Below are positions 112 to 24,672 of a DNA stretch of 64,000 nucleotides, in pieces. A program made the position numbers and the translations under genes. Origin of the DNA: Lepidodermella squamata (taxonomy: Eukaryota; Animalia; Gastrotricha); contig JBLDXI010000009.1 in the NCBI GenBank assembly GCA_047495785.1, forward strand, positions 186,001-250,000, written 5' to 3'. The notes under the pieces are model-generated. The model worked only from the letters and a program-made list of their open reading frames with translations. It did not search any database and had not been told where the DNA came from. Numbering within the stretch: the first letter of the stretch is position 1; every line of letters starts with the position of its first letter.

Positions 112-2320
112 TCAAATAGCGGCTTCAGGTCGACTAAGGTTCGTCTGACCATTTGTTCCATTGCCAAGAGAGCCGAGAGGAGACGTTACGAATCGGCCAT
201 TACTTTCTGCAAGGAGGCGCAATTGCGATCGCATCAGAGATAACGCTGACGAATTGCCGACAAATGATGAACCAGCCTTAAATGTTTCCGAAATTAATCA
301 ACAGTCTTAAGAATATACTTCAAGCTCACATTCAGCTCACTGGCCGTGCCTGAGTAAGATCGAGTGTTCGAACCCACAGAGGCGGTTACGCTTACCAACT
401 TTACAATTGCACGTGCCCTTTCTAGATATTTTCTATATCTCTGTTCCATTATCAGTGTCTCGTTCTTCCGCCGCGCAATCTCAGCTTTAAGCGACTGGAC
501 CAGCTTAAAATAAACAAGCAAGCTATGTGATGTCAAAAAATTGCGCTAGAATTTACATTGTCTTTGTCAGAATCATCGATAATGCCCGCTTCGAATCCGT
601 CGCCATTATAGTCATCCTTCAGGCTGGGCAGGGTTGGAAGTGTTTCGTAACTAGCTGTAGTTGATTCAGCTGCGGCAAGTCTCAGCTTTGCGTTTTCATC
701 GACCAAAGATCGATTTTGAGAGAGTGCATTCATCAGTTGCTCACGGGTTTCAGCCAACTTGGCAGTGGCTTCTTCAAATTGGCGCTGGAGCAAATCAAAC
801 CTTAAGCTTGAACCAACACCATCGTCATCTGACAGCATATAAAACATTTTCAAGTTACTTGTGAGATCTTCCATCAATAAAACAAACCCAGCAACTGCTT
901 TTCCGTGTTAGGAGTGGAGCCATCTGAGTTAACATCGTTTACGCCAGAGCGTCGCTTCGAAACTGAACGCAGCCTATTAAGTTGGTCCTGTAATGATGCA
1001 TTCTCGTTCAGAACAGTTTGCAAGCGTTCTTCGACAGTTCGCAGTTTACGCTGAGCAGCACTCGACTGCTCAACTTTGCGCTGCAGTTGCTCTATTTGAG
1101 ACTCGGCAATCGATAAGCGCTCGACGGCGTGCTGAAGATTCAGCTTATAGTCATTAATATTAAACCATAAAGCGAAATTACCCTGGCGACGTCAAGCTCG
1201 TCTCTCAGCCGTTTTACTTCACGGCTGGCAGTAGCCAATTCCGTCACACGAGCTCGCAACTGAGCCGCCTCATGCTCGGCTGCTTCGGCTTTTTGCCTCC
1301 ACTCATCTCTAGCTGTATCAATTTTTTCCAGCTCATCGCGCAATCTTTCGTTTTCATCTAGGACGGAACTTCGTTGCCGCGCCATTTCCCTGAGTGAGTG
1401 TAAAATATTTCGTTTCAACGCGCATGTGTGAGTAGGAAATTGAGCTTACCCCGAAGCAGATTCAACTTTCTGAAGCTCATCCTCCAGGTCGCCTTTAATT
1501 CTTGCAGAAACTACTGATTCAGTTCTAATTCGCATTGAACTCAGCTCCATTTCTAGACGTTTCACTTTTTCTGCCAATTCATCACGGCCTTGTAAAGCTG
1601 ATTGTAACTGGATACGCAAATTCTGTTCCATTCATAGATTTTATAGGTAATAAAATATCTTCATATTATTTGACGTCGTGCGTTACCTTTGTGTCATCAG
1701 CGTTACTTTCGACCACGATCGGACGCACCGGTTCGTCGACAGCGTCACTATGGTCATCTGTGCGTTCCAACACCTGAATCAACACAAGACCGATTAATCA
1801 TAACCAAAATGTACAAATATTGGGAATGTATGCATACCAATTTCACCGCCTCCATCACGCCAGCTTGAATGTCGGTTTCTAGGTTTAAAATAGCTTCAAT
1901 AAAGTGTTGCCGTCTGGAACAGCTGACAGCACATCCCACAGTGAGCTGTAAAAATCGATACACTGATTCGACAACCGGAGCCGTTCCATCGCTAGACGAG
2001 GGCTGATATTCAGCTAAAACTTTCAAATCTGGAATCAAATTCGAGGATGTAATTGCCGAGCCAGTGACTTCAAGATAGAAATCCTGAAGGCGAGACATTA
2101 CTCGCTGTAGATTGGCCATCTTTAATCTCCAAGAATGGCCGCAATCTTGGACAAAGCCATCCAGCCATATCGGAGAAAAGAAAACCGGATCGATTTCGTG
2201 CAGAATTTCGGCAAAAGCTATTCCGTCAACGAAGTCAAGTGCGCTTTGATGAGGAGCCTCGATTTTGAAGATTTGAACCCAAGAAAGAAGGGTATCGATT
2301 ATGGCCACACTTGAAGACAT
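112..2320 (-). CDS. HOOK: Hook-family dynein adaptor (multi-exon)
   Basis: N-terminal Hook domain (LLSWVQIF..DGIAFAEILHEIDPVFF..W..WRLKMANLQRV..LQLTVGCAVSC..FIEAILNLETDIQAGVMEAV), coiled-coil exons (LRDELDVAR), and MEQRYRKYLERARAIV typical of Hook C-termini. ATG at 2320. The 3' end (TGA 112-114) is inferred from a phase-0 splice and is less certain. Confidence 0.85.
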
Positions 2321-2983
2321 CAATTGATTTTCAAGAGTAAATAAGAGCAGCCAGCTACTAGAATCATAATAAAAATAAGTTCGAGTAAATTCGTGTAAGA
2401 CGCTTCATGAAGACGCTGAAAGCTGAAGTGACAACAACCTGTGCAAGTCCCAACTGCCCAAATGAAACATGATGAATCATAGATTATTGTGAGTATCATG
2501 ATATGAGAACTTTAAAATGTCAATACTAAGCTGAGAACAGAGGACGCGAAGATACATGAAAGTTCCACATAAAGCCTGGCCTCGCTCTTTTATACTGACC
2601 TCAGCGCTTTTCATTTTTCCCAAATCGCCTTTTAGCCTTTGGTCTTCCAGTAACGAATCTGCGGGTCTCTGGTTTTGCCTGAGCCACTCGAGCTATGATA
2701 TGCTGAGCTCTGCCTGGCTTTTTCAAAGCATTATCATTCGAGCCAGTTTCGACAAGGATGTCAGATGTCACACACAGTATCTGGGTTGTCTCAGTCACCT
2801 GTGAAAAACTAAATAAAAACATTATTTCCGTCCATCTGTGAGGTGTTTCAAATTTGCGGAAGTTGTATTTTGATATTTATATATTGATAAAATATAAATC
2901 TACAAAAAATCATTTACTGCAAAGATTATATAAATATTTATTTGGTTGCTATGGCAAAAGAGGCCTTGCCATTTGCATGCTGT

Positions 2984-3848: not shown

Positions 3849-6800
3849 ATGATGGCCACTGAAGTGATAACCGAAGTGGGCAGTCAGTCATTAATAGAAA
3901 AATGGAATCACAAAAAAGTAGCCAATCATCTACTTGATGCCAGTAAGTTGGAATTGCATGCACTTGAGGTTCTTTAAATTGCATTTCCTCTCAATTTACA
4001 GAGCTATTCAACAGATTAGGATCAAACGATGTATTTTCGATCAATCCGACTTCCGTACATTTCGCCGGATTTTCCGTGGGGAAGACAATTTCGAAAACTT
4101 TCGAAGTTGTCAACAAATCAGAATTAATTCAACGGCTTCACCTGATTCCCCCACAATCTCAAAACTTCAAAATATTCTACACCAAGCAGGTAATTTGTTT
4201 ATATTCTAATAATTTTCCATGTAAATGGCATGTTGGTTTTTAGGAGAGATTTGCTCCAGGCTGTACATTGAAGTGTCGAATAGAGTTCTCACCTCAAGGT
4301 TAGTGAAACGTTTATCTGCTTCGAAGGATGTTTCCTTACTGCTCTCGATTTTCAGAATGGAAATACTATTATGACTGTGTCAGACTGCATTGTCCGGTAG
4401 GCCAATTTTATTTCTTAAGAAACTTTATGTCGAATCAACCGTCTCAGGATGAAGAAAATTTGATAATTCCGATTCACGCATACCCTGTTGTTGACACATC
4501 TGCTTTCCCAAGTGTTCTCACGTTCCGAGGAGTAACTATTGGAGAAAGGTTGGTGATTATTGCTCTATGAATTGCGATTAATCCGATTACTGTTAAACAT
4601 TAGCGTTACCAAATATATTCCATTACGCTCCCATGTTCCTGTCGATTTCCATTTTTCATTGAAGTTATTACAAAAAACACCGTCTTTCACGGTTTCGCCA
4701 TTAAAAGGTAGCCGATATATTTTGAGACGTTTTAGCGGAATATAAATTTTACATTTTTATCCGACTAGGCGTCGTGCCTAAAAATGGAGAAGCATCAATC
4801 TGCGTAACATTTGCGCCTAAGCGTTTCGCCACAGAATCTTTTCACTTTCAATTGGATGTCGCACAGTTTGACTCACCTCGGCTGGTTTGCTTAGTTACAG
4901 GCTCTTGCGAATCGCAGGTTCAGGCTTTGGATCCGAAAAAAGTGGAGAGCGCTTTGGCTAAACTAGTACGCGTAGATCCAGTCGCAATATCTCCTCTAGC
5001 GAGAGCCAGGATGCGTTATATGCAGCAAACGAAAGGCGATCTGAACGATATTTCGAGTACATTGGAATCAGTTGCCGATGGAGTCAACCCTAGCAACCTA
5101 TTCAGGCCAGAAAATGTGGAGGGTCCGGAGTTTTTTGCGATGATTAATTCCCACGCCGCTGTCAGCCGACTGCTACTTCATGATCCATCAAAGATGAAAA
5201 GCAAGGATTTGAAGAAAGGTGAGAGTATATCCGATGCATGCTGATCCTTTAACGTAACTTTCTATGTAGCAATGGCGAGCAAAAGCTCAGACGACAACAG
5301 ACAGGCCAAGGTATGTGAATATTTATTGATAATAGCGAGCTCGCTCGGTAACGAATTATTAACATTTCCTTCAGGCAGCCAGGTTCGAGCAGGAGTTGCG
5401 TCAAGCTGACTACAGAGAACGACAGAACCAATTGATATGGCAAACTACCCTTGGCTCTGAGCCTCTTCGTGAATCTCAAAGGGAAAGAATTCTCAACGAG
5501 CGCCGCAATGCGTGGCGACGATATAATGTATGCCAAGTCTAGATAGCGTTGCATCAATTAACTCCTATTGTTGAATAGGCTCGGCGTGGAGAAGTAACGA
5601 GTTCGATGAAAGACGATTCAAGCTCCAATACGATCATGCGAATTTCATTTAGAAGAACGTATCGGTTGTACACTATGGAACCAGTTATCTCTTTCGGAGC
5701 GCCCACCTTCGATCCATACAATAATGACTTCTGGCGGTTAAAGCTGGAGAGAATAGAGCTTTTCCAACAGGCCTCAAGAGCTGTGTTGATCCGGAAGCGC
5801 GCCGACGGTAAAATAGTTGGGCTGCGAAAGTTGAAGGCTGCCTTTCAAGCCGGTCGGCGCAGTGTCAATCCTGAGGATATACTAGAAAGTTAGTTGAACC
5901 CGATAGGTTTGCTTATCGATTTAATCGAATTAACGAGGCATAAGATCGAGATTTAATCGCTTAATTATTTTCATTATTAACCCTGCACTTTGAAAATTAT
6001 ACCAGCCTACGATGTACTACACCGTCTATGGATTAAAAACGAACCGAGTCTTGAAGACTTTGACGAGCCTGAGTCATTGAATAATATCCGTTCGTTTCGA
6101 TTATTAATTTCTGTGAAAAAAGCTTACCTCGGGCATCGATTGCCTCGCTTGAAGCGCTCAAATATTTATTTTTGCTTATATCTCGTTCTGAATTAGCTTC
6201 GCTTCGTTTTAAACTTAACATATCAGTTTATTTGCGTAATTGAAGTTAGCTGACCAATTTCATATTTTCCCCCAGCAGGCTACTGAAAGCCTTTGATGGA
6301 ATTGTGTCTCGTGATTTTCTCTCTTTCCGGATTTTCCGGGGAGTTAGGTGTTCAAAGTTTTGAATGGCGCATGAAGTAAATCTAGGGCACAATGCCGGTT
6401 CTCAAAATTTGGGTGGTCCGCTGGGGAAAATCCAAACGCGGCCTGCTAACTTCAATCACCTTTCGAGGATATTCTTACTTTTGCTAGCTGAGAAATTTTC
6501 GGCCTGTATAGCCATTCGTTTCACCGTTTAATCGGTTACTGTTTTTTCAGGGAAATCATCGAGCAAGACAATAGATCAGAATTTGTCAGCGGAATCAATA
6601 AAAATCGCTCGGAAGAAATTCGTCAGTGAATCGCCGATCGATGTGAAAGAAAACATTGTAAGGGCACCTGGTATATTTAGCCCGATTGTTCTAGCGTTAT
6701 CATTTGTAGACCGATGTTGCTATCGCGCCGCTAGTTTTCTGGGCATCTTCTGACATCGCGTTCGATCGCAAACCTCTTTTCCACTCGATTAGGGTCACGC

Positions 6801-7754
6801 GTCAATTCCAATTGCTTGGCTTCAACCCTGTCGGTGTATCGAGTCTTGCGTACGCCGCAAAGAACGCACCGGGAAGACTTTACAGAACTGGCGCCGAGGA
6901 CGAGTTGACTACGGCGCCAAGCTTAGCATTAAAGCAGACTAGAGTTGACGCTTACGATCAACAGGAAGGCCAGGAAGATTCCAAAAATGACAGCGTGGTG
7001 ATTGCTCGACTCAGTGTGCCAACTTTCATGCTTGCTAAAAATCAATTTTCGACGGTTAGAATCAATGAAGCGTAAATATTTTTTTTAAATTAATCCTTAT
7101 AGGAACGTTATGCCGGTGGCAGCCTGACGTTTTTTCATCAACCGCTGCCGTATGGTGAAAGCGAGCAGGACGCTCAGTTCTGTCCCACTGCCCGCTATTC
7201 AGCTGTGAACAACCGATTCAAGGGACCCTCAAATGTACTTCACGAGAGGGTAAGGATATATTTCTTTATAAATCCATACGTGATTATAAAATAATTCTCT
7301 GGCAGGATGTTATCAAGGGAATGATGTCCTGGCGCAATTTGCCCGCTGCTGGCCCTTTAGCTACATCTGCTTTACCGTGCTCGACTCAACTGCTTGCTCT
7401 TCGCTTCGCCGATAGCGTCGAACCTAATGATCTGCTTCCAGCACCCCCACCGGTTCTGCTCAGGCGAGCTCCCGACTCAGATAAGGATTTCGCCGGGGAT
7501 TTGTTTGTTATCAGCTTCCTCTATGTTTTTGGCTTCATTTTGATTTTATATTCAAGGGATGGAATTTCCGGTAATGTGGTCGAATTAAGTCCCGACGCTG
7601 TTGCAGCCAAGTTTGAGCTGCTCAAAGTACAGCAAAACAAACCATTGGTTGACAGGTAAGAATAATTTCAAAATAGCAAATAAATTTCTGTCGAATGGGG
7701 TGAATGCATCGCTGCAGAAAGCTCAAAACCTTACATTGCGTCCCATATCATTAG
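3849..7754 (+). CDS. CFAP221: Cilia- and flagella-associated protein 221 (PCDP1; central-pair projection)
   Basis: Spliced peptides VANHLLDA, VHFAGF, EWKYYYDCVRLHC, LIIPIHAYPV, PLPYGESEQDAQFCPTARY, DVIKGMMSWRN and VELSPDAVAAKF match recalled CFAP221 motifs (VPNHLLES, EWRYYYDCIRVHC, LLVPIHAYPV, DIIPGIMHWK). Short GT-AG introns. Confidence 0.9.
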
Positions 7755-7908
7755 CGTCACACCGAAAGGGCAGCTTATGAATGAAATGGCTCACACATGG
7801 GAAAACCTGGGTCGATTTATAAGGAAGACCTAGAGAATAAGACCTAGGTACTACAAACTACAACCAACAGCCAACATGATTCACGAGCTTATGTGGTCAC
7901 TTGAGTTT

Positions 7909-8410
7909 TCATCTTTTTGACGTGAAGCTAACGATAAGAAATATCACCGCAGAAAAAAATAAAGAAGATAGACACGAAACTCTGACCTCTGAACCACATC
8001 TGAGCCGTTCCAAATAAAAATACGATAATGGATAGAATTAAGACCATAGAAATGCTAACAAGAGATAAAAATCCGAAATGCTTGAATCACGTAAAATCAC
8101 CGAATAGGGTTTATTGATAGATTGGGATTCGTTTGGGCTGTCAGAACCAAATTCATCCCCTAAATACGCATTCACCTTGAAATGCGAAGACAGAATGAGC
8201 GACCGAAATGTTTTCGCAGTGTAGTACCTAAGTGCCAAAAAAGTTCCCGCATTCACTCCTTTTGACAATGGCAGAGACTGATAGTGTTAGAAATAGGGTA
8301 ATGATTTTATTGCTAATAACGATATTTACATGTCTAATGAATTTTTCTAAAGCGATGTGCAAGGTAAGACGCATCCACCGTTCAGTTCGCTGCCGGATAT
8401 TTGAGTTCAT
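7909..8410 (-). CDS. Candidate spliced small ORF (114 aa) or 3' part of a decaying gene, copy 1
   Basis: Exons 8410-8330, 8277-8101, 8054-7987, 7927-7909 with GT-AG introns of 52, 46 and 59 bp keep one frame. No homology recognised. Confidence 0.4.
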
Positions 8411-9164
8411 CTTTCATGACTAATTTCTCTGTTGCTATCATGATCATTTATGTTCAAAGATACTAGTTGCGAATCGGGTATGACGCTTCAAAATTAAGCT
8501 CGCGGTTCTTCTCACAATTGATAAAACGCCACTTATGATAAAAAAAAATGTGATCAATATTGTTGATTCCAGTCCATTCAGTCAAATGAAGCAGTTACTG
8601 CGCGTTGTGTAATGGTGCTCACTGAACCATCACTGAACAATTTCACGCCTTCAAATTTTGCATTCTCCATTTGCCATTATTTGATCAATGATCTGTTTAT
8701 AATTACCTATTAACAGGGCAGCAGCAGGCTCTAAAGGCCGAAAAATCCAACCTGAAGCAACGAAACAAGCAAGGGATCAAAATAAAAAGTAATTTGCATT
8801 TTTATTGTCTTTGAGATGTGAGGAAGCTCTAACTCTTCTCTAGATCGGAGCGAGACACGACACTAGCAGAGGAATCAAATCGACCAATTTTTAAAGCCTC
8901 AAACAGAGCTGCACTTTACATCAACTCCTAATGTAGCTCTAACGTTCTAACGAAGATAACCTACCTTGTAATTACGTTATTATATTTTTGCCACATGTTT
9001 TTTCAAGTCAAAGGAATTATTCTGATATCAAAATAAAGTTTGCTATGTAATCAATGTTTCTAATTATTGTTGAGGACTGGATGCAGACACATTGTTTTTT
9101 AAGGCACGGGGCTTCGATTTCGGAAACATCACGGGGCACCTGGATAGCATGCAATAGGTACCTA

Positions 9165-9611
9165 CCGTATTTTACGAATTATAAGACCCTGCCCTGTATT
9201 TTTTTCAAACGAGGTTCAAGTCCTGCCCTGTATTTAGGGTCTGCCCTTTAATTCGGCTCTGCCCTATAATTTTTCGAACCTAATCAGTCACCTGAAAAGT
9301 ACCTATATCAACAGTTAAAACCGCCGAATAACCCCTATAGCTACTGCCTTCCACCTGTGACTACACGCGTGAAGTGTGTACTCATGTAGATTAAGGTGGA
9401 TAAAGGACGATTAGTGCACTTACTGACGAAAAATCGCAACCTATCCAACTTTAACCACTTACGCAGCAGGCGCTCATGTAAGCCACTTCATACAAGGCCC
9501 TGCCTATTAATAAGGTTCTGCCCTTTATTATTTCAAATGACCATTACCCTCTGCCCTTTATTCCGGTTCTGCCCTATAATTGGGTCCTGCCTAATAATTC
9601 GTAAAATACGG
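9165..9611. mobile_element. Non-autonomous Tc1/mariner-pogo-type MITE, copy 1
   Basis: 18-bp perfect TIR CCGTATTTTACGAATTAT, TA on both flanks, multiple subterminal CTGCCCT repeats at both ends, no transposase. Confidence 0.85.
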
Positions 9612-10464
9612 TATATAATATCCCACGGTTTATTCAGATGGCTATATCGGCTATACCACCTGATACATGAGAAGGCTGCGGTTTGCGGTTTTGACTTTAA
9701 TAGCGAAAGATCCAATTCAAACAATAGAGGGCAGGTCTCATTTGTAAGGCTTGACGTCAATAGCAATGAAATAAGGCAGTGCCTTCTAACTTCTAGTTCG
9801 GAATTTACGGTAGGCCTGTTCAACATGTACCTCTTCACGGGGTGCGTCTCATTTATTTAGCAATACCTTCTTTGCTTTCATAATAAAGCATTATATCAGG
9901 CTACGAACCAACCACCGGACGTTGGGGGCTGAGTATCCTGTGTCGTCCATGTGAAGCAAGGTTAGAGGTCTATTGATTCACGTTCCATGAGACCTGAGAT
10001 CGCCTGTAAAATTTGTCTTTTGCGAAAATTTCAAATATAAATAAAGCTGTTGCTTAGAGTGAATCGGCTGGCTTAGAGCTGGGTAGTTGGAGGCCATGGG
10101 CACTTGTTCCGTACGCCAGAGCGCAAATGCGAAAACGGGCTCATGTTGAGCCGCCAACGGATTGAAAGAGAGAAAGAATGCAAAGTGAGTAAAGATCTTT
10201 ATTTCGTCAAAGTAACTTTATAACAATGAATCTTGCCTATTTTGACTCAATAGATGCCGGAGCTTCGCGTTATGCACGAGACATTAAAAGAACAAGGAAG
10301 ATGTGCCTCGTCTCATCCTCACACGGGATAAGATACTTTATCACTAGCTTTTATACAGTAACAGTAAACTATGTGTCCATTTCGAAGAGTTCATCATGAT
10401 TAAATGCGCGAATTTAACCGAGTTCTTCTGGAAAAAACTGTCAAACAGTTTGTACCATGGCAGT

Positions 10465-12291
10465 TCAATTCTTTAGAGCGCCTCCATCACCTTCGGAACA
10501 GAACCTTTTGCGCCCTTTCAAAGGCAGCGAGTCGAAAATTTCTAGAATGACACGAGTTTATAGTAATAAATCGAGCAACAACTGACTTACCACTCTTGTG
10601 TATGTTTAGATCAACGGCTTTCTGGGCGAATTTTTCGATCCAAAACTGGGCTAGCGGCATGTCAATTAGAATGTCATCAGAATCTAACCATAAACACGGT
10701 TACTCGGTCGTGAAAAACATGATACTAAAACGAACCGGCATCGATGCGGCGATAAGCTTGCGCAATCTGGCGTTGCGTGATCACTCCCTCTGCTGTAAGC
10801 TTCGAAATGAGCTTCAAAAAAGCGTCGAGAGCTGTGTCTCTATTTTCGTTAATCAACATGATTAATAACTCGTACACGAGTTCATGGTGGAAATGCGGAA
10901 CATCCATTGCTTTAAGCTGTTTAATGAACTCATCGCAGTCTCCGGCAGCGAGATATTCGCGCAGGATAGCTTCTAACTCGTGGGTCAGGAGCACAACGGG
11001 CCGCGGGCAATATGATGCACCCGAGCCACTGTCGTAACGGCCACGAGAGCTGCGGGGAGACGCTCCAGCCCCTGTGTTGGAATCATTCGATGACTCAGCA
11101 TGCCTGTGTGCGTCGTCATTAGATTCACTGCAGTGTCGAGCGGTTGAAATCCATATGCCGTCTAGTCTGAAAACCATGCGACGGTCGGATAGCAGACCAT
11201 GCGCAACTTTTGCGGCATCGCCGGCTAAGCCCGAATTGTCTGTCTCCAGCAAGTTTTTGACAAATGATTCGGGCAAACATTTGTCTGCGACTGCGCGGGC
11301 CATAAAGCGACCAATCGTTTCCACAGCATCGGGGTTGTCGACAGCCAGGTCTGTAAGGTCGCGCAAAATGGCACTGAACCCAGCCGAAACTAGCTCTGGC
11401 ACTAGAATACCAGCAGCGCATGTATCTGCTAATAGAGCGCTAACTAGTTCACGATGAGCTGGACGATGCTCTAATACAAAACATCATGTTATATGCCCAT
11501 GCCGTAAATCTCGATAATAATACCTAGTGCCATCGTCAAGGCCATGGAGACAATACCGTGAATATAATTTTCAAAATCCCGAGTGTTTTCCAATTCACGC
11601 AGCTCTTCCTAAATTTCGAACGCAGTAATTATTAACGAATTCCAAAGTTTCAAAATATGCAATCTTACTGCAACTTCGTTTACATCGCCAGTTTGAAAAT
11701 ATTCGTTGAGAATATTTTTAACTTCCCGGCGGAAGTCCTCCTCTGATACCACGCGTGGCTCGTCGATAAAACTATCATCCTAAAAGACGACAATCGGCAT
11801 TAGAACTCAGCACCAGCACCAATTGAGAAAGGTAGTACCTGTGCTTCTGAATCGTAATTCGGGTCGCTTTCGTCTAGAGCTGCGCTCGTAGCATAAAGCT
11901 CACATCCCGCCTGGAATAAAGTAGATGAATAATCTTCTTCATAAACAAACTGGTCACACTTGCCTTTCCCCAAACTGTCTTAGATCCTGCGCCACCCTTT
12001 TTCGGATTTCCTAGCAAATTAGTGAAATTTCCTGCGTAAAAACAGGTCAGCTATTATCAAATGTTCGCCCAAAATACCTTTATTCTTCCCCAGTGGTTTG
12101 CGTGAGCGTCTCGAATTTTTCGTCAGCAATCTTTTGGCAACAATATTTTCGGGTTTATTAGCTGCCGCTCGTGCGCTGTTTGACGAAGGTCCGACGATAC
12201 GCAAGCCATTGTCGGCATCAAGCTGAGAGATAAGAGCTTCGGTCGATAATTGCGAGATATCTTGTTTTTCACTTTCTTCCATAGCTGACAT
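10465..12291 (-). CDS. PDCD4: Programmed cell death protein 4 (eIF4A inhibitor, two MA3 domains), copy 1
   Basis: PKKGGAGSKTVWG..DPNYDS, DLAVDNPDA..GRFMARAVAD, VPHFHHELVYE and C-terminal GRKRFCSEGDGG are diagnostic PDCD4 motifs. Confidence 0.95.
11911..11963 (-). other. GC-AG intron in PDCD4 (also at 20105-20157)
   Basis: Donor AAG|GCAAGT and acceptor TTCCAG|. Only this donor keeps the conserved WGK-AG..DPNYD frame; the nearby GT leads to a stop within 3 codons. Confidence 0.8.
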
Positions 12292-13328
12292 GAAATTACT
12301 TTAATGTTTAAATTTAAACTAGAGCCCATCGTGAAACAAACAATCATTTTCTATGTTCAAGTCGTCGGGTTGCGTTTGAAAGGAGCACATTCTATTTTAT
12401 TGTTCATGAATAATGATAATGGGCGGCCTCTCTCAACGCAACGCGACGAAGTACGAGATACGACCACAGACCACATAGCCAGCTGGAAAACTCACTTGGT
12501 TCGCAGCCAACTTCGTTAAAAAAAGCTTCGTGATAACGGGGCATGTGGCTACCCTTGGAATTATTATTCCTCACATTATTTTATATTTATTTTAATAATA
12601 TTTTCGAAAACAATATTTGTTGGCATGAAATGGCACCATAATTGTAGGTAAGTGATATTTTTCAATCTTTCGTAAATCGACAAGGTTGACAAACAAGTTT
12701 CGAATTTTTTTTCGAAACTGTCATATTCATTTCTATCGAAGATAAGTCCGGTCCCACCATGAATCTTCCTCCCTCCTCCTGCCGCCTTCTGCCTGATAAC
12801 CCCAGTCATGCACTTCTCGGTCAGTTGATAGATAATAGTTATACCCAAGTGCTCAACATTTCACTCTGCTCGGTTACAGTATACCTCGATATATCTAACC
12901 CCTGACCCCTGATCCCGCCACCGTGCACTCGTCATGCGTCATGTTTGCATTCCGTCGTAATAGTTGCACACCCCGCATTGAATTTTCGGTAACAAGCGCT
13001 CTTATCTCCACACTGCTAAATGGGCTGAGATGGCGTCGCAGGGTTTAATTTTTCATCCACCAATCAGGATTCTAAATTCATTTTACCGCGATCACTTTAT
13101 TATTGCGATGAAATTTGCCATTTCACTCATGAATTTTGTTAGAATTCATTTTCATTCGGTTCTTCTTACCGTCGCGCGAAGTTGAGTGTCGTCTTTTTGA
13201 TCGATATTACTTCTGAGAAGATGTCAGTTTTTATGGCGGTAGTTGTATTATGTCTGCTTACCATCAATATTTTCACGTAGGTTAACTTTTTCAATGCTAA
13301 TGTCGGCAATTTATCGATAACGTGAGCT
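12292..13328. promoter_or_regulatory. Divergent PDCD4/CCDC186 intergenic region (candidate bidirectional promoter; copy at 20486-21522)
   Basis: Head-to-head ATGs about 1 kb apart; CCAAT near 13060. Function inferred from position only. Confidence 0.4.
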
Positions 13329-15352
13329 ATGTTATCACTAGCCGATGGAGTTGCGGATGATACCTTCCATCAAGATGCAAACGGCGAGTTTCTACCTACG
13401 AGAGAAAGTGTTTCTCCGGCACCTGACATCGATGAAGAAGAAATTACCCTCAAAACTCCGAGAATGAAACTGTTATCTGAGATTGCTTTTAGAGCAATCA
13501 CGTTTGAGCGGCTCAAAAATTATTTTGCGGCCGATGCGATTCACCAATCAGAGAAAAATGACGAGCTTGCAAGGTCAGTTTGTATTCTTTGAGTTATAGA
13601 AGTCTCATCGCGGCTATCGTTAGGCTTCGAGGAATTACGCTATCATTGGAAGAAAAGATTTCTCAGCTTAATCAAGAAAAGTCTGTTCTTGAAGACTCGC
13701 TGCAGAGGAAAACAAAAGAGGTATGTATAAAAATAGAATGGAATAAATGTATAACGCGCCGAATCGCAGTTGGAAGATGAAAAACAAACTCACAAATCCG
13801 ATCTGACCCTTGCTGAAGAAAAGCTGAAGAAACACGATGAGGCTGCGAAGCGTGCGATAACCTCATACCAGCAAGATGTCAACAACAAACTTGTTGAGGT
13901 GAAGCTTGTGCCGAGTGCTTCTATGGTATGACTTTACTTTTTTTTCATCAGGCTGCGAAGCAAATCGAAGATATTCGGAAGGAAAGAGAAAACGCAGTTA
14001 TGAGATTTGCCCAAGCAGAGCAGCAAGTTATCGATTCGAGAACAGCTGCGGAAAAGTATGAAGCGCAGTGCAAACTTGTCGTAAGAGAGAAAGACCTTCT
14101 AATGGAGAGAATGAAGACGCTGACGGACGAGAGAAAAAAGCTGCAATCTTTCATCGATCAGAAAGTTGGTTTGGTTTAACGTTTATTCAACAAATTTCTT
14201 CAAAAGCAATAGCATCCAAGAAAAGGCAGCTTGGAAATTTTATTAAATTCGCTTATTTTCCATCGAATGTACCAAAATGCTGATTTGAGCGATTTATTTT
14301 CTAGACTCTGGAGGTCGTTGCATTACAAAAGGAGCTAAGAGAGTCTAAAGAATCCAGCAAAGAATCTGATATTAGGCTAAAAGCCGTTTTAGCGAAGGCA
14401 AAAACCGATCAGGACACTATTCAAGATCTAAGAATGAGGCTGGAGCGTACTCAGCAAATGCTCATCGAAGTGAAAACCGAACTTGAACATACCAAACAAG
14501 ATCTGAATGACAAAGAGCAGAAGCACAAGAGCGACAAAGAGCAAAGCGAATTGCAACGCCAGCAGGAAAATTTTCAACAGCGAATGGAACTGGCAGAGGT
14601 TTGACGCGGCTGATTTAATATTTTGTTTTGATTATCGACTTGAAAATTATAAAGATCAACGAACGTTTGCGATTCGAGTTGGACAGCTTGAAGCAAAAGC
14701 ACAGGGACGCACTGGAAGAAAATATAACGCTCAAAGACAGAGTCACTTGTCTCGACTCTGAGCTCAAGCTTTGCGAGCAAAGTTTGGATTCGTAAGTGAA
14801 CATTATATTTCATTAACCTCGTCTCATATACTTTCCTACAGTGTCCGGTCAGAAATTGCCGCCTTCAAAGACGAAGCTGTAAGTGCTAAAGAGGATGCGG
14901 CTGCTGCCCAGGAAAGAGGTAAATTTCGTGTAATAAATTAACTTGGTTCAAAATTTTTTACTTTGACCAAAAGCTGCTGAATTGGTTAATCATAATGAGC
15001 AACTGTCATTGTTTCGGTCGCAAATCCAAGCAGAAACCAGTGGTCTGCGTGAAAATTTGGCTGATCTTCAACGAGACTTTTCCAATCTCACTGTCGAAAA
15101 TAATTCTTTGAAAAGTGAAACTGCTAACCTCATGGCTCAGGTGAGAAATTCTAATACCAAAAGATGATCAGATCTTATCAGATACTTTAGCTGGCTGAGG
15201 AACGGAGAGTAGCTGAAACCACTATCGAAAACTTGAAAGGCGAGCTGACCACGGTGAAACAAGCGGCACAAGACTTCGAGAAACGTTTCCTTATAGGAAC
15301 GTTATGCCGGTGGCAGCCTGACGTTTTTTCATCAACCGCTGCCGTATGGTGA
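13329..15352 (+). CDS. CCDC186: 5' portion of CCDC186 truncated at the duplication junction (potential fusion to the CFAP221 3' exons, ending 15948)
   Basis: Identical to 21523-23484 up to the junction. Read-through gives ...FEKRF-LIGTLCRWQPDVFSSTAAVW* (TGA 15350-52). Confidence 0.85.
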
Positions 15353-15948
15353 AAGCGAGCAGGACGCTCAGTTCTGTCCCACTGCCCGCTATTCAGCTGT
15401 GAACAACCGATTCAAGGGACCCTCAAATGTACTTCACGAGAGGGTAAGGATATATTTCTTTATAAATCCATACGTGATTATAAAATAATTCTCTGGCAGG
15501 ATGTTATCAAGGGAATGATGTCCTGGCGCAATTTGCCCGCTGCTGGCCCTTTAGCTACATCTGCTTTACCGTGCTCGACTCAACTGCTTGCTCTTCGCTT
15601 CGCCGATAGCGTCGAACCTAATGATCTGCTTCCAGCACCCCCACCGGTTCTGCTCAGGCGAGCTCCCGACTCAGATAAGGATTTCGCCGGGGATTTGTTT
15701 GTTATCAGCTTCCTCTATGTTTTTGGCTTCATTTTGATTTTATATTCAAGGGATGGAATTTCCGGTAATGTGGTCGAATTAAGTCCCGACGCTGTTGCAG
15801 CCAAGTTTGAGCTGCTCAAAGTACAGCAAAACAAACCATTGGTTGACAGGTAAGAATAATTTCAAAATAGCAAATAAATTTCTGTCGAATGGGGTGAATG
15901 CATCGCTGCAGAAAGCTCAAAACCTTACATTGCGTCCCATATCATTAG
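15297..15948 (+). pseudogene. CFAP221: Duplicated promoterless 3' exons of CFAP221
   Basis: Copy of 7103-7754 that retains the TTATAG acceptor at 15291-96. Confidence 0.85.
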
Positions 15949-16102
15949 CGTCACACCGAAAGGGCAGCTTATGAATGAAATGGCTCACACATGGGAAAAC
16001 CTGGGTCGATTTATAAGGAAGACCTAGAGAATAAGACCTAGGTACTACAAACTACAACCAACAGCCAACATGATTCACGAGCTTATGTGGTCACTTGAGT
16101 TT

Positions 16103-16604
16103 TCATCTTTTTGACGTGAAGCTAACGATAAGAAATATCACCGCAGAAAAAAATAAAGAAGATAGACACGAAACTCTGACCTCTGAACCACATCTGAGCC
16201 GTTCCAAATAAAAATACGATAATGGATAGAATTAAGACCATAGAAATGCTAACAAGAGATAAAAATCCGAAATGCTTGAATCACGTAAAATCACCGAATA
16301 GGGTTTATTGATAGATTGGGATTCGTTTGGGCTGTCAGAACCAAATTCATCCCCTAAATACGCATTCACCTTGAAATGCGAAGACAGAATGAGCGACCGA
16401 AATGTTTTCGCAGTGTAGTACCTAAGTGCCAAAAAAGTTCCCGCATTCACTCCTTTTGACAATGGCAGAGACTGATAGTGTTAGAAATAGGGTAATGATT
16501 TTATTGCTAATAACGATATTTACATGTCTAATGAATTTTTCTAAAGCGATGTGCAAGGTAAGACGCATCCACCGTTCAGTTCGCTGCCGGATATTTGAGT
16601 TCAT
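16103..16604 (-). CDS. Candidate spliced small ORF (114 aa), copy 2
   Basis: Copy of 7909-8410 at +8194. Confidence 0.4.
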
Positions 16605-17358
16605 CTTTCATGACTAATTTCTCTGTTGCTATCATGATCATTTATGTTCAAAGATACTAGTTGCGAATCGGGTATGACGCTTCAAAATTAAGCTCGCGGT
16701 TCTTCTCACAATTGATAAAACGCCACTTATGATAAAAAAAAATGTGATCAATATTGTTGATTCCAGTCCATTCAGTCAAATGAAGCAGTTACTGCGCGTT
16801 GTGTAATGGTGCTCACTGAACCATCACTGAACAATTTCACGCCTTCAAATTTTGCATTCTCCATTTGCCATTATTTGATCAATGATCTGTTTATAATTAC
16901 CTATTAACAGGGCAGCAGCAGGCTCTAAAGGCCGAAAAATCCAACCTGAAGCAACGAAACAAGCAAGGGATCAAAATAAAAAGTAATTTGCATTTTTATT
17001 GTCTTTGAGATGTGAGGAAGCTCTAACTCTTCTCTAGATCGGAGCGAGACACGACACTAGCAGAGGAATCAAATCGACCAATTTTTAAAGCCTCAAACAG
17101 AGCTGCACTTTACATCAACTCCTAATGTAGCTCTAACGTTCTAACGAAGATAACCTACCTTGTAATTACGTTATTATATTTTTGCCACATGTTTTTTCAA
17201 GTCAAAGGAATTATTCTGATATCAAAATAAAGTTTGCTATGTAATCAATGTTTCTAATTATTGTTGAGGACTGGATGCAGACACATTGTTTTTTAAGGCA
17301 CGGGGCTTCGATTTCGGAAACATCACGGGGCACCTGGATAGCATGCAATAGGTACCTA

Positions 17359-17805
17359 CCGTATTTTACGAATTATAAGACCCTGCCCTGTATTTTTTTC
17401 AAACGAGGTTCAAGTCCTGCCCTGTATTTAGGGTCTGCCCTTTAATTCGGCTCTGCCCTATAATTTTTCGAACCTAATCAGTCACCTGAAAAGTACCTAT
17501 ATCAACAGTTAAAACCGCCGAATAACCCCTATAGCTACTGCCTTCCACCTGTGACTACACGCGTGAAGTGTGTACTCATGTAGATTAAGGTGGATAAAGG
17601 ACGATTAGTGCACTTACTGACGAAAAATCGCAACCTATCCAACTTTAACCACTTACGCAGCAGGCGCTCATGTAAGCCACTTCATACAAGGCCCTGCCTA
17701 TTAATAAGGTTCTGCCCTTTATTATTTCAAATGACCATTACCCTCTGCCCTTTATTCCGGTTCTGCCCTATAATTGGGTCCTGCCTAATAATTCGTAAAA
17801 TACGG
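17359..17805. mobile_element. Tc1/mariner-pogo-type MITE, copy 2
   Basis: Copy of 9165-9611 at +8194. Confidence 0.85.
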
Positions 17806-18658
17806 TATATAATATCCCACGGTTTATTCAGATGGCTATATCGGCTATACCACCTGATACATGAGAAGGCTGCGGTTTGCGGTTTTGACTTTAATAGCGA
17901 AAGATCCAATTCAAACAATAGAGGGCAGGTCTCATTTGTAAGGCTTGACGTCAATAGCAATGAAATAAGGCAGTGCCTTCTAACTTCTAGTTCGGAATTT
18001 ACGGTAGGCCTGTTCAACATGTACCTCTTCACGGGGTGCGTCTCATTTATTTAGCAATACCTTCTTTGCTTTCATAATAAAGCATTATATCAGGCTACGA
18101 ACCAACCACCGGACGTTGGGGGCTGAGTATCCTGTGTCGTCCATGTGAAGCAAGGTTAGAGGTCTATTGATTCACGTTCCATGAGACCTGAGATCGCCTG
18201 TAAAATTTGTCTTTTGCGAAAATTTCAAATATAAATAAAGCTGTTGCTTAGAGTGAATCGGCTGGCTTAGAGCTGGGTAGTTGGAGGCCATGGGCACTTG
18301 TTCCGTACGCCAGAGCGCAAATGCGAAAACGGGCTCATGTTGAGCCGCCAACGGATTGAAAGAGAGAAAGAATGCAAAGTGAGTAAAGATCTTTATTTCG
18401 TCAAAGTAACTTTATAACAATGAATCTTGCCTATTTTGACTCAATAGATGCCGGAGCTTCGCGTTATGCACGAGACATTAAAAGAACAAGGAAGATGTGC
18501 CTCGTCTCATCCTCACACGGGATAAGATACTTTATCACTAGCTTTTATACAGTAACAGTAAACTATGTGTCCATTTCGAAGAGTTCATCATGATTAAATG
18601 CGCGAATTTAACCGAGTTCTTCTGGAAAAAACTGTCAAACAGTTTGTACCATGGCAGT

Positions 18659-20485
18659 TCAATTCTTTAGAGCGCCTCCATCACCTTCGGAACAGAACCT
18701 TTTGCGCCCTTTCAAAGGCAGCGAGTCGAAAATTTCTAGAATGACACGAGTTTATAGTAATAAATCGAGCAACAACTGACTTACCACTCTTGTGTATGTT
18801 TAGATCAACGGCTTTCTGGGCGAATTTTTCGATCCAAAACTGGGCTAGCGGCATGTCAATTAGAATGTCATCAGAATCTAACCATAAACACGGTTACTCG
18901 GTCGTGAAAAACATGATACTAAAACGAACCGGCATCGATGCGGCGATAAGCTTGCGCAATCTGGCGTTGCGTGATCACTCCCTCTGCTGTAAGCTTCGAA
19001 ATGAGCTTCAAAAAAGCGTCGAGAGCTGTGTCTCTATTTTCGTTAATCAACATGATTAATAACTCGTACACGAGTTCATGGTGGAAATGCGGAACATCCA
19101 TTGCTTTAAGCTGTTTAATGAACTCATCGCAGTCTCCGGCAGCGAGATATTCGCGCAGGATAGCTTCTAACTCGTGGGTCAGGAGCACAACGGGCCGCGG
19201 GCAATATGATGCACCCGAGCCACTGTCGTAACGGCCACGAGAGCTGCGGGGAGACGCTCCAGCCCCTGTGTTGGAATCATTCGATGACTCAGCATGCCTG
19301 TGTGCGTCGTCATTAGATTCACTGCAGTGTCGAGCGGTTGAAATCCATATGCCGTCTAGTCTGAAAACCATGCGACGGTCGGATAGCAGACCATGCGCAA
19401 CTTTTGCGGCATCGCCGGCTAAGCCCGAATTGTCTGTCTCCAGCAAGTTTTTGACAAATGATTCGGGCAAACATTTGTCTGCGACTGCGCGGGCCATAAA
19501 GCGACCAATCGTTTCCACAGCATCGGGGTTGTCGACAGCCAGGTCTGTAAGGTCGCGCAAAATGGCACTGAACCCAGCCGAAACTAGCTCTGGCACTAGA
19601 ATACCAGCAGCGCATGTATCTGCTAATAGAGCGCTAACTAGTTCACGATGAGCTGGACGATGCTCTAATACAAAACATCATGTTATATGCCCATGCCGTA
19701 AATCTCGATAATAATACCTAGTGCCATCGTCAAGGCCATGGAGACAATACCGTGAATATAATTTTCAAAATCCCGAGTGTTTTCCAATTCACGCAGCTCT
19801 TCCTAAATTTCGAACGCAGTAATTATTAACGAATTCCAAAGTTTCAAAATATGCAATCTTACTGCAACTTCGTTTACATCGCCAGTTTGAAAATATTCGT
19901 TGAGAATATTTTTAACTTCCCGGCGGAAGTCCTCCTCTGATACCACGCGTGGCTCGTCGATAAAACTATCATCCTAAAAGACGACAATCGGCATTAGAAC
20001 TCAGCACCAGCACTAATTGAGAAAGGTAGTACCTGTGCTTCTGAATCGTAATTCGGGTCGCTTTCGTCTAGAGCTGCGCTCGTAGCATAAAGCTCACATC
20101 CCGCCTGGAATAAAGTAGATGAATAATCTTCTTCATAAACAAACTGGTCACACTTGCCTTTCCCCAAACTGTCTTAGATCCTGCGCCACCCTTTTTCGGA
20201 TTTCCTAGCAAATTAGTGAAATTTCCTGCGTAAAAACAGGTCAGCTATTATCAAATGTTCGCCCAAAATACCTTTATTCTTCCCCAGTGGTTTGCGTGAG
20301 CGTCTCGAATTTTTCGTCAGCAATCTTTTGGCAACAATATTTTCGGGTTTATTAGCTGCCGCTCGTGCGCTGTTTGACGAAGGTCCGACGATACGCAAGC
20401 CATTGTCGGCATCAAGCTGAGAGATAAGAGCTTCGGTCGATAATTGCGAGATATCTTGTTTTTCACTTTCTTCCATAGCTGACAT
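18659..20485 (-). CDS. PDCD4: PDCD4, copy 2 (complete)
   Basis: Same exon ORFs as copy 1 at +8194. Confidence 0.95.
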
Positions 20486-21522
20486 GAAATTACTTTAATG
20501 TTTAAATTTAAACTAGAGCCCATCGTGAAACAAACAATCATTTTCTATGTTCAAGTCGTCGGGTTGCGTTTGAAAGGAGCACATTCTATTTTATTGTTCA
20601 TGAATAATGATAATGGGCGGCCTCTCTCAACGCAACGCGACGAAGTACGAGATACGACCACAGACCACATAGCCAGCTGGAAAACTCACTTGGTTCGCAG
20701 CCAACTTCGTTAAAAAAAGCTTCGTGATAACGGGGCATGTGGCTACCCTTGGAATTATTATTCCTCACATTATTTTATATTTATTTTAATAATATTTTCG
20801 AAAACAATATTTGTTGGCATGAAATGGCACCATAATTGTAGGTAAGTGATATTTTTCAATCTTTCGTAAATCGACAAGGTTGACAAACAAGTTTCGAATT
20901 TTTTTTCGAAACTGTCATATTCATTTCTATCGAAGATAAGTCCGGTCCCACCATGAATCTTCCTCCCTCCTCCTGCCGCCTTCTGCCTGATAACCCCAGT
21001 CATGCACTTCTCGGTCAGTTGATAGATAATAGTTATACCCAAGTGCTCAACATTTCACTCTGCTCGGTTACAGTATACCTCGATATATCTAACCCCTGAC
21101 CCCTGATCCCGCCACCGTGCACTCGTCATGCGTCATGTTTGCATTCCGTCGTAATAGTTGCACACCCCGCATTGAATTTTCGGTAACAAGCGCTCTTATC
21201 TCCACACTGCTAAATGGGCTGAGATGGCGTCGCAGGGTTTAATTTTTCATCCACCAATCAGGATTCTAAATTCATTTTACCGCGATCACTTTATTATTGC
21301 GATGAAATTTGCCATTTCACTCATGAATTTTGTTAGAATTCATTTTCATTCGGTTCTTCTTACCGTCGCGCGAAGTTGAGTGTCGTCTTTTTGATCGATA
21401 TTACTTCTGAGAAGATGTCAGTTTTTATGGCGGTAGTTGTATTATGTCTGCTTACCATCAATATTTTCACGTAGGTTAACTTTTTCAATGCTAATGTCGG
21501 CAATTTATCGATAACGTGAGCT

Positions 21523-24500
21523 ATGTTATCACTAGCCGATGGAGTTGCGGATGATACCTTCCATCAAGATGCAAACGGCGAGTTTCTACCTACGAGAGAA
21601 AGTGTTTCTCCGGCACCTGACATCGATGAAGAAGAAATTACCCTCAAAACTCCGAGAATGAAACTGTTATCTGAGATTGCTTTTAGAGCAATCACGTTTG
21701 AGCGGCTCAAAAATTATTTTGCGGCCGATGCGATTCACCAATCAGAGAAAAATGACGAGCTTGCAAGGTCAGTTTGTATTCTTTGAGTTATAGAAGTCTC
21801 ATCGCGGCTATCGTTAGGCTTCGAGGAATTACGCTATCATTGGAAGAAAAGATTTCTCAGCTTAATCAAGAAAAGTCTGTTCTTGAAGACTCGCTGCAGA
21901 GGAAAACAAAAGAGGTATGTATAAAAATAGAATGGAATAAATGTATAACGCGCCGAATCGCAGTTGGAAGATGAAAAACAAACTCACAAATCCGATCTGA
22001 CCCTTGCTGAAGAAAAGCTGAAGAAACACGATGAGGCTGCGAAGCGTGCGATAACCTCATACCAGCAAGATGTCAACAACAAACTTGTTGAGGTGAAGCT
22101 TGTGCCGAGTGCTTCTATGGTATGACTTTACTTTTTTTTCATCAGGCTGCGAAGCAAATCGAAGATATTCGGAAGGAAAGAGAAAACGCAGTTATGAGAT
22201 TTGCCCAAGCAGAGCAGCAAGTTATCGATTCGAGAACAGCTGCGGAAAAGTATGAAGCGCAGTGCAAACTTGTCGTAAGAGAGAAAGACCTTCTAATGGA
22301 GAGAATGAAGACGCTGACGGACGAGAGAAAAAAGCTGCAATCTTTCATCGATCAGAAAGTTGGTTTGGTTTAACGTTTATTCAACAAATTTCTTCAAAAG
22401 CAATAGCATCCAAGAAAAGGCAGCTTGGAAATTTTATTAAATTCGCTTATTTTCCATCGAATGTACCAAAATGCTGATTTGAGCGATTTATTTTCTAGAC
22501 TCTGGAGGTCGTTGCATTACAAAAGGAGCTAAGAGAGTCTAAAGAATCCAGCAAAGAATCTGATATTAGGCTAAAAGCCGTTTTAGCGAAGGCAAAAACC
22601 GATCAGGACACTATTCAAGATCTAAGAATGAGGCTGGAGCGTACTCAGCAAATGCTCATCGAAGTGAAAACCGAACTTGAACATACCAAACAAGATCTGA
22701 ATGACAAAGAGCAGAAGCACAAGAGCGACAAAGAGCAAAGCGAATTGCAACGCCAGCAGGAAAATTTTCAACAGCGAATGGAACTGGCAGAGGTTTGACG
22801 CGGCTGATTTAATATTTTGTTTTGATTATCGACTTGAAAATTATAAAGATCAACGAACGTTTGCGATTCGAGTTGGACAGCTTGAAGCAAAAGCACAGGG
22901 ACGCACTGGAAGAAAATATAACGCTCAAAGACAGAGTCACTTGTCTCGACTCTGAGCTCAAGCTTTGCGAGCAAAGTTTGGATTCGTAAGTGAACATTAT
23001 ATTTCATTAACCTCGTCTCATATACTTTCCTACAGTGTCCGGTCAGAAATTGCCGCCTTCAAAGACGAAGCTGTAAGTGCTAAAGAGGATGCGGCTGCTG
23101 CCCAGGAAAGAGGTAAATTTCGTGTAATAAATTAACTTGGTTCAAAATTTTTTACTTTGACCAAAAGCTGCTGAATTGGTTAATCATAATGAGCAACTGT
23201 CATTGTTTCGGTCGCAAATCCAAGCAGAAACCAGTGGTCTGCGTGAAAATTTGGCTGATCTTCAACGAGACTTTTCCAATCTCACTGTCGAAAATAATTC
23301 TTTGAAAAGTGAAACTGCTAACCTCATGGCTCAGGTGAGAAATTCTAATACCAAAAGATGATCAGATCTTATCAGATACTTTAGCTGGCTGAGGAACGGA
23401 GAGTAGCTGAAACCACTATCGAAAACTTGAAAGGCGAGCTGACCACGGTGAAACAAGCGGCACAAGACTTCGAGAAACGTTTCCAAGAGCAGGAATCAAT
23501 GTTGATAAGTGCGCGAAGAAAGCATCTTCGGGAAGTCAAGGAGCTACAACGGCAGCTGCGTGGGCAACAAGGTCACGTGGCTGTTAGTGAACAGCCTCAT
23601 CTTGACGTCAACTCGAACACTCGCGGGGTATGTCAACATTACAGAATTTTTGGCCGTAGATTGATCAGTTAAGATCCATTACTTGGCTTATAATGGCATT
23701 GCTCTTTAAAAGACGTGAAGACGTGAAAATTTGAAAATTGCACCAACGCGTCGGAAGCCGCATAAAATTTCGGCACGAATTCTAGCATTCATGCGCCACA
23801 TGGATGAAAATTAGAAAAAGAGCCTTCGATATACATATTTCTCCTATATATATATATATATTTCAGCTCTCACGGGCGAGTTCGAACAACTCCATACAGG
23901 ATCAATCAAATCACTCGTCTGCAAATACGTCGTCAGTGAAAAACGGCGAGTTACCTCAATCGCACCAGTTTTCCTCGAACTCAGCCGATGTAAGTGGCGT
24001 GACTATCATTCCCTTGAAATCGTTATATAAATGTTTGTTGATGTATCGAAGGACTATGTAATAGTTGGTGGTGGTTACCAAGAAGCAGCCAGCAGGCAAC
24101 AAGTCATTGAGAAAATAGTCGGACTTCAAAGAGCCCTTGCTAAGAAGTCGGAGCGCTTGGACTTCCTCAACGAACAAGTGCGATGTTTGACCGACGAAGT
24201 TCAAAAGAAATCAAAAATAATCCAAAGCTTGGCTACTCGCGAAACTGGTGAGACGGGTGCTCTCGGCAACGATACGATAGACCGGCATAAGGTAACAATT
24301 AATTGTCCGAATATTTCAATTCTTGAAATCTTTTTCTCACTGAAGGCGACGATGGCAAAAAAACATGGAATTATGGCCAGTGTTTTATCCTCTGAACTTC
24401 ACGATGGGCGGATGACGCTAGATTTATCTCTGGAGATAACGCGGAAATTGCAAGAAGTGCTTGAGGAAACTTTGCTGAAGAATATCATGTTGAAAGAATC

Positions 24501-24672
24501 ACTTGATACGCTTGGTCATGAAATCAGTCATCTATCTAAAGTTTGCATTCAAAATGTTTAATCTCTATTGCTTACATACCGAAATTTCCAATTTCAGGAA
24601 AATCGGGATCTGAAGCTCACGTTGAAAGGTGTCTTTGAGAAAGAGCTTTCAAATGCTGCCACCAGGAAATGA
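21523..24672 (+). CDS. CCDC186: Coiled-coil domain-containing protein 186 (CCCP-1; dense-core vesicle trafficking), complete copy
   Basis: ERENAVMRFAQAE, IEKIVGLQRALAKKSERLDFLNEQVRCLTDEVQKKSKIIQ and MTLDLSLEITRKLQEVLEETLLKNIMLKESLDTLGHEI match the recalled CCDC186 C-terminus. Canonical short introns; stop TGA 24670-72. Confidence 0.9.

Follow-up and report, generated by a model that had tools for sequence, protein, structure and literature searches.

A probable young tandem duplication in the gastrotrich Lepidodermella squamata joins the 5' part of CCDC186 to the 3' exons of CFAP221

The window, as the whole analysed stretch of DNA is called here, comprises 64,000 nucleotides of contig JBLDXI010000009.1 of Lepidodermella squamata (contig positions 186001-250000) with zero N, and the locus described lies 200 kb inside this 5.65-Mb contig. 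The genome is a compact invertebrate one, with an assembly of 121 Mb and introns of mostly 48-62 nt in this region. The window contains the genes CFAP221 and CCDC186 on the plus strand and, between them on the minus strand, a gene resembling PDCD4 with two MA3 domains; the coordinates of all features are collected in Table 1. A HOOK-family gene (554-2350, minus strand) lies upstream of CFAP221. The start of the same contig (1-30000) consists of satellite arrays with units of ~178 bp and ~168 bp that are 97-99% identical, probably a subtelomeric or centromeric array.

Gene models were compared with a relative of this animal known from metagenome sequence: the representative protein closest to the CCDC186 of the window is encoded on three environmental contigs, which come from two ENA projects. 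One of these contigs (ERZ27332993 k141_169934) carries HOOK (-), CFAP221 (+), the MA3 gene (-) and CCDC186 (+) in this order, with 45-70% amino-acid identity to the window. The position of the HOOK-family gene is conserved, and the relative's product has Pfam HOOK_N/HOOK. Most introns of these genes have been lost in the relative's contigs, and a single ORF of 312 codons spans CCDC186 exons 5-9, which makes the intron-poor contigs a useful ruler for exon boundaries in the present genome. The 176-aa ORF at genomic positions 24031-24558 of the window, looked up as an identical sequence, matched no contig. All genes were identified by searches made exon by exon or with stop-free stretches rather than with joined spliced proteins.

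Table 1. Features of the duplicated locus, in window coordinates (position 1 is the first nucleotide of the window)
Feature	Position	Strand	Basis and remarks
Duplicated unit, copy A	7094..15287	+	Self-BLAST, boundary inspection
Duplicated unit, copy B	15288..23484	+	Self-BLAST; final 3 bases TCC are the microhomology with the unit start
Junction	15285..15299	+	Sequence, boundary inspection, exon model
Difference between copies	11820 (C; T at 20014)		Copy alignment
CFAP221, intact parent	~3858..7659	+	PDB matches; colinear with relative; last 3 exons in copy A
CFAP221 3' exons, copy B	15297-15443, 15500-15696, 15751-15850, TAA 15851-15853	+	Relative's ORF; ~148 codons
AATAAA poly(A) signal	15873..15878	+	20 nt past the conserved stop
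PDCD4-like (MA3-domain) gene, complete	10465..12291; second copy 18659-20485	-	Pfam MA3, E 2.5e-20; colinear with relative
CCDC186 5' part, copy A, exons 1-4	13329-13573, 13624-13720, 13770-13898, 13952-14164	+	Exon model
CCDC186 5' part, copy A, exons 5-8	14305-14598, 14655-14791, 14842-14918, 14974-15140	+	Exon model, relative's ORF
Truncated exon 9	15191..15352	+	Sequence, stop-free stretch; 33 CCDC186 residues, then 20 new
CCDC186, intact parent	21523..24672	+	744 codons; 5' exons in copy B
CCDC186 3' exons of parent	23385-23627, 23867-23989, 24052-24291, 24346-24540, 24598-24672	+	Protein matches, tblastn, relative's ORF

CFAP221 (PCDP1, FAP221) is a protein of the central apparatus of motile cilia and is present in the solved structures 9ijj (chain L) and 7sqc. 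The exons in the window have their best match among solved structures in PDB 9ijj_L at residues 203-261 (E 1.3e-6), with a further weak colinear match at 443-483, and also match Chlamydomonas FAP221 (7sqc); in Pfam they give sub-threshold matches to PapD-like/CFAP74 Ig domains. The relative's ORFs give stronger matches to 9ijj_L, at residues 179-284 for the N-terminal ORF (E 2.9e-17) and at residues 569-794 for the C-terminal ORF (E 5.9e-9). A direct PDB search with the three short 3' pieces from the window, which are 50-54% identical to the relative, returned no match; the duplicated 3' exons are nevertheless assigned to CFAP221 proper because the relative's continuous C-terminal ORF matches 9ijj_L at 569-794. 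The parent gene is thus colinear with the known protein from its Ig-like N-terminal domains to about residue 794.

The exon boundaries at the 3' end of CFAP221 were likewise placed with the relative. The parent pieces 6710-7054, 7103-7249 and 7306-7500 abut in its ORF (at residues 115/116|117 and 162|163), which gives exact junctions at 7054|7103 and 7249|7306. The relative's protein ends in DR and a stop at the same position as the TAA in the window (7657-59 and 15851-53), where the CFAP221 frame most likely ends. In the sequence-only reading, the CFAP221 part of a fusion had been put at about 160 aa, with a last exon reaching 15948. That estimate is shortened here to ~148 aa, and the mini-exon proposed at 15912-15948 is doubtful because the conserved stop is followed by AATAAA.

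The penultimate exon of CCDC186, 24346-24540, matches the extreme C-termini of at least 446 representative proteins with E-values down to 5e-16 and identities of at most 76%, among them the C-termini of named CCDC186 proteins from molluscs, insects, crustaceans, echinoderms and cnidarians (E 1e-15). Taken together, the C-terminal exons share 60-73% identity with proteins named CCDC186, and tblastn with such proteins is colinear with the window gene, including the coiled-coil N-terminal half. The CCDC186 of this species is itself probably absent from the protein collection, because none of the matches listed is more than 76% identical to the conserved exon. Pfam searches with single exons report only sub-threshold coiled-coil or Ig-like matches and not the CCDC186 family; the relative's product, however, carries PF27942 CCDC186_helical. 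A search of the ESM Atlas with the conserved exon led to unrelated coiled-coil clusters, and these were rejected. The boundaries between exons 5, 6, 7, 8 and 9 abut in the relative's ORF at 81|82, 126|128, 152|154 and 208|209, and the donor-acceptor pair 15140|15191 abuts exactly in that uninterrupted frame.

CCDC186, known as CCCP-1 in Caenorhabditis elegans, is a golgin-like maturation factor of dense-core vesicles, and in C. elegans the CC3 domain of CCCP-1 binds membranes, is both needed and enough for the protein to localise and to bind RAB-2, and cannot be dispensed with for function (10.1101/105668). The gene in the window is its orthologue by the conservation of the C-terminal exons and the colinearity of the N-terminal half. 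The conserved C-terminal helical (CC3) domain is present in the parent gene and is encoded at 24052-24672.

The PDCD4-like gene stands head to head with CCDC186, with ~1 kb between the two start codons, an arrangement that suggests a shared bidirectional promoter region. The relative has this neighbourhood as well. An interspersed repeat of ~450 bp is found at ~9163-9613 (and again at 17357-17807); it has at least 40 copies of 88-100% identity on many contigs and looks like a short non-autonomous mobile element. This repeat explains part of the extra 2 kb that lie between CFAP221 and the PDCD4-like gene relative to the metagenome contig.

A BLAST search of the window against itself finds a sole match, an ungapped alignment of 7094-15290 to 15288-23484 that spans 8,197 bp at 99.988% identity. 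The two copies are adjacent and in direct, head-to-tail orientation, and the repeated unit is 8,194 bp long. Their lone mismatch falls between conserved exon blocks of the PDCD4-like gene and is probably intronic. The left breakpoint lies inside the 48-nt CFAP221 intron at 7055-7102 and the right one inside CCDC186 exon 9, both genes being on the plus strand. Both sides of the join share 3 bp of microhomology (TCC), so that the exact breakpoint may be any position between 15287/88 and 15290/91; ~5% of random blunt joins are expected to show at least 3 bp of microhomology. The junction at 15285-15299 reads GTTTCCTTATAG|GAA and connects the truncated CCDC186 exon 9 to the acceptor of the CFAP221 intron, preceded by the final 9 nt of that intron (TCCTTATAG). 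From copy A come exons 1-8 of CCDC186 together with 100 nt at the start of exon 9, and from copy B these 9 intron nucleotides and the final three CFAP221 exons. The sequence-only reading had described such a junction between a CCDC186 exon and a CFAP221 acceptor, had named both genes correctly, and had stated that both parents remain intact and that the chimeric locus has its own duplicate of the CCDC186 upstream region; each of these claims is borne out, the last because this region lies within the 8,194-bp unit.

The DNA flanking the breakpoints is unique in the assembly, the left region matching only itself and copy B, and a search of the 121-Mb assembly (151 contigs) finds no third copy of the unit. 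Non-allelic homologous recombination (NAHR) between repeats was considered as the mechanism and rejected, the breakpoints being unique and the ~450-bp repeat within the unit being far from them.

A duplicated segment of near-perfect identity may also be produced by genome assembly. False duplications are usually located at gaps or contig ends, and genuine replication or end-joining events typically leave microhomology such as the 3 bp at these breakpoints. If the 8.2-kb unit were single in the animal and had been written twice, from two retained haplotypes or through a chimeric read, the chimeric locus would not exist. The one mismatch in 8,197 positions suits two alleles as well as it suits a young duplication, and a metagenome scan for a 26-mer at the unit end was blank and is uninformative on the choice. 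However, the locus is internal to its contig with no N, the breakpoints lie in unique DNA and share a microhomology that few random joins would have, and neither the window nor a sample of 18 non-satellite pieces of 10 kb from the contig shows another such repeat. None of these 18 pieces contains a tandemly duplicated unit of less than 5 kb, the only size that can be detected in stretches of 10 kb. An assembly artefact is accordingly improbable in our judgement, and the duplication is probably real in the animal because it is internal to a long gapless contig, has unique breakpoints with microhomology and has no similar repeats nearby. A second tandem duplication was considered on contig C24 and rejected: C24:4063275-4072130 holds direct repeats of 2.2 kb that are 99.9% identical with two gaps, but these lie 6.6 kb apart from start to start and are not in tandem. 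Each of them includes a copy of the ~450-bp repeat, and the pair may be an element with long LTRs or a local dispersed duplication.

The single substitution per 8,194 bp corresponds to d = 1.2e-4 (Poisson 95% interval 3e-6 to 6.8e-4), so that the duplication would be extremely recent and quite possibly polymorphic. It is derived in the lineage of the window, because the relative's contigs carry the order HOOK, CFAP221, MA3 gene and CCDC186 once, with the equivalent of CCDC186 exon 8 continuous with that of exon 9. The proposed course of events is that 8,194 bp were duplicated in tandem very recently in this lineage, through microhomology. One breakpoint would have fallen 9 nt ahead of an acceptor near the 3' end of CFAP221 and the other in CCDC186, which is the second gene downstream and has the same orientation, within its exon 9. 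The event would have left CFAP221 and CCDC186 intact at the two ends and, between them, two PDCD4-like genes with the chimeric locus in the middle. The chimeric locus would begin with the CCDC186 promoter and exons 1-8, continue with what is left of exon 9, and end with the three final exons of CFAP221 and the poly(A) signal that belongs to them.

Tandem duplications with breakpoints in two genes of the same strand are a standard and well-documented source of chimeric genes. In Drosophila, ~10% of the tandem duplications that capture genes give rise to chimeras in parallel orientation (PMC4069613). The present locus is of the same kind as the chimeras of the Drosophila surveys (PMC4069613, PMC5460883): the duplication is direct and very young, it places the promoter and 5' portion of the downstream gene in front of the 3' portion of the upstream one, both parents are intact, and a whole gene lying between them is duplicated. 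In contrast to the Drosophila cases, the predicted default transcript here loses the frame, which would stay open across the fusion only through another acceptor. The host also differs, being a little-studied small invertebrate.

Two outcomes of splicing across the junction can be predicted, which share the exons of copy A up to exon 8. These sum to 1,359 nt, or 453 codons, and end in phase 0 at CAG|GTGAGA (15140/41). The natural acceptor at 15191 is intact and closes an untouched intron of 50 nt, a usual length in this genome. The frame entered there is stop-free over 15191-15349 and crosses the junction to a TGA at 15350-15352. The exon that begins at 15297 is also phase 0, which is the sole open frame across it and agrees with the boundaries in the relative's ORF. 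A splice from 15140 to 15297 would therefore be in frame, a phase match that is a one-in-three chance event, and would give a fusion of 453 + ~148 = ~601 aa. In the sequence-only reading, the donor had been taken as phase 0 after roughly 450 aa, the CFAP221 exon as phase 0, the two as joinable in frame, and the normal acceptor as leading to a premature stop at 15350. Its arithmetic was right; the relative confirms both splice sites, and the stop is read directly from the sequence.

The same reading took this in-frame fusion for a meaningful expressed product, enriched as nonsense-mediated decay (NMD) clears the isoform that contains the stop. Beyond the matching phases, with which the relative agrees, this view can point to the YAG and the 9-nt pyrimidine-rich stretch that survive at the junction acceptor, and to the stop of the competing isoform, which lies 91 nt before the next exon junction (15443|15500). 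A second in-frame route also exists on paper, from a donor ACG|GTGAAA at 15253/54 to 15297. Against it, the in-frame route is handicapped because the natural acceptor is intact, the branch motif is lost, ten other AG dinucleotides intervene between the acceptor at 15191 and the junction acceptor, and the fusion intron would be 156 nt long. In the parent intron at 7055-7102, a single branch-like motif is well placed, TTAAT at 7090-7094; its A sits just outside the duplicated unit and is lost at the junction, which leaves one yUnAy motif at a distance of 3 nt from the AG. These motifs were judged by consensus rules that may not be those of this animal. Acceptors are heterogeneous in this genome, and the junction acceptor may work better than such rules indicate. 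Regarding size, 14 of the 16 introns defined here are 48-62 nt long (for CCDC186, 10 of 12 are 49-62 nt and the others 140 and 239 nt), and the 43-nt intron of the second route would be shorter than all 16. The in-frame CCDC186-CFAP221 isoform is thus possible on paper and, we infer, a minor product at most.

The predicted default product has ~506 aa and consists of the CCDC186 coiled coil with a new tail of 20 residues, without the C-terminal membrane and RAB-2 domain. A message is expected to be a substrate for NMD where an exon junction follows its stop at a distance of more than ~50 nt, where its 3' UTR is abnormally long, or both. The default message has both properties, and it is a plausible NMD substrate because its predicted 3' UTR after the TGA at 15350 is ~430 nt long and is crossed by two introns (the native CFAP221 message has ~40 nt). 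In this respect the locus resembles alternative splicing coupled to NMD, since the frame is kept open by one of the two possible splices and meets a premature stop ahead of exon junctions by the other. It differs from such systems in that the choices here are an accident of the breakpoint rather than an evolved switch, and the rules of NMD may differ in this animal group.

CC3 is absent from both possible chimeric products. Of CCDC186/CCCP-1, nothing but the N-terminal 453-486 residues, a poorly conserved part, is left in the chimera. Of CFAP221 it would carry only the final ~148 residues, which correspond to ~650-795 in the solved chain of 836 residues, and none of the N-terminal Ig-like domains. 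With neither the CCDC186 targeting domain nor those Ig-like domains, the fusion has no functional role that would be evident from its parts, and one substitution in 8.2 kb leaves almost no time for selection to have acted. A fusion that is meaningful and enriched by NMD is for these reasons highly improbable. The description of the locus as a newborn chimeric gene is likewise overstated, as the default product is a truncated CCDC186 without its conserved C-terminal domain. A combined outcome, with a real duplication from which the in-frame isoform is produced, would tie a golgin-like, oligomerising coiled coil to the CFAP221 C-terminal segment in a protein of ~600 residues, perhaps tens of thousands of generations old, with NMD as a filter that leaves the open-frame isoform; we would give this outcome hardly any weight.

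The clearest predicted effect of the duplication concerns the PDCD4-like gene, which lies wholly within the unit and is thus present in two complete copies. The relevant result may accordingly be the dosage of this gene, with the chimeric locus a neutral or mildly harmful by-product that is due to decay or be lost. The unit includes the entire MA3-domain gene with the ~1-kb shared upstream region, and for young tandem duplications partial and chimeric by-products are the rule (PMC4069613). However, whole-gene tandem duplicates in Drosophila yakuba are reported often to show no raised expression (PMC5460883), and we regard an importance of dosage as possible but doubtful. The account that we consider likely as a whole is that of a young and real duplication, in which the chimeric locus would be transcribed from the duplicated CCDC186 upstream region and spliced mostly at 15191, giving a truncated product with the fusion as a minor isoform.

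If the junction is real, the locus is a clean and datable case in which one duplication has given a spare PDCD4-like gene, a truncated gene and a possible fusion. It leaves the knowledge of how new genes originate unchanged; what it adds is an example from a group of animals in which molecular genetics has hardly begun. It also serves as a warning for annotation, as automatic gene finders are likely to call a spurious or truncated extra CCDC186 or CFAP221 at this position.
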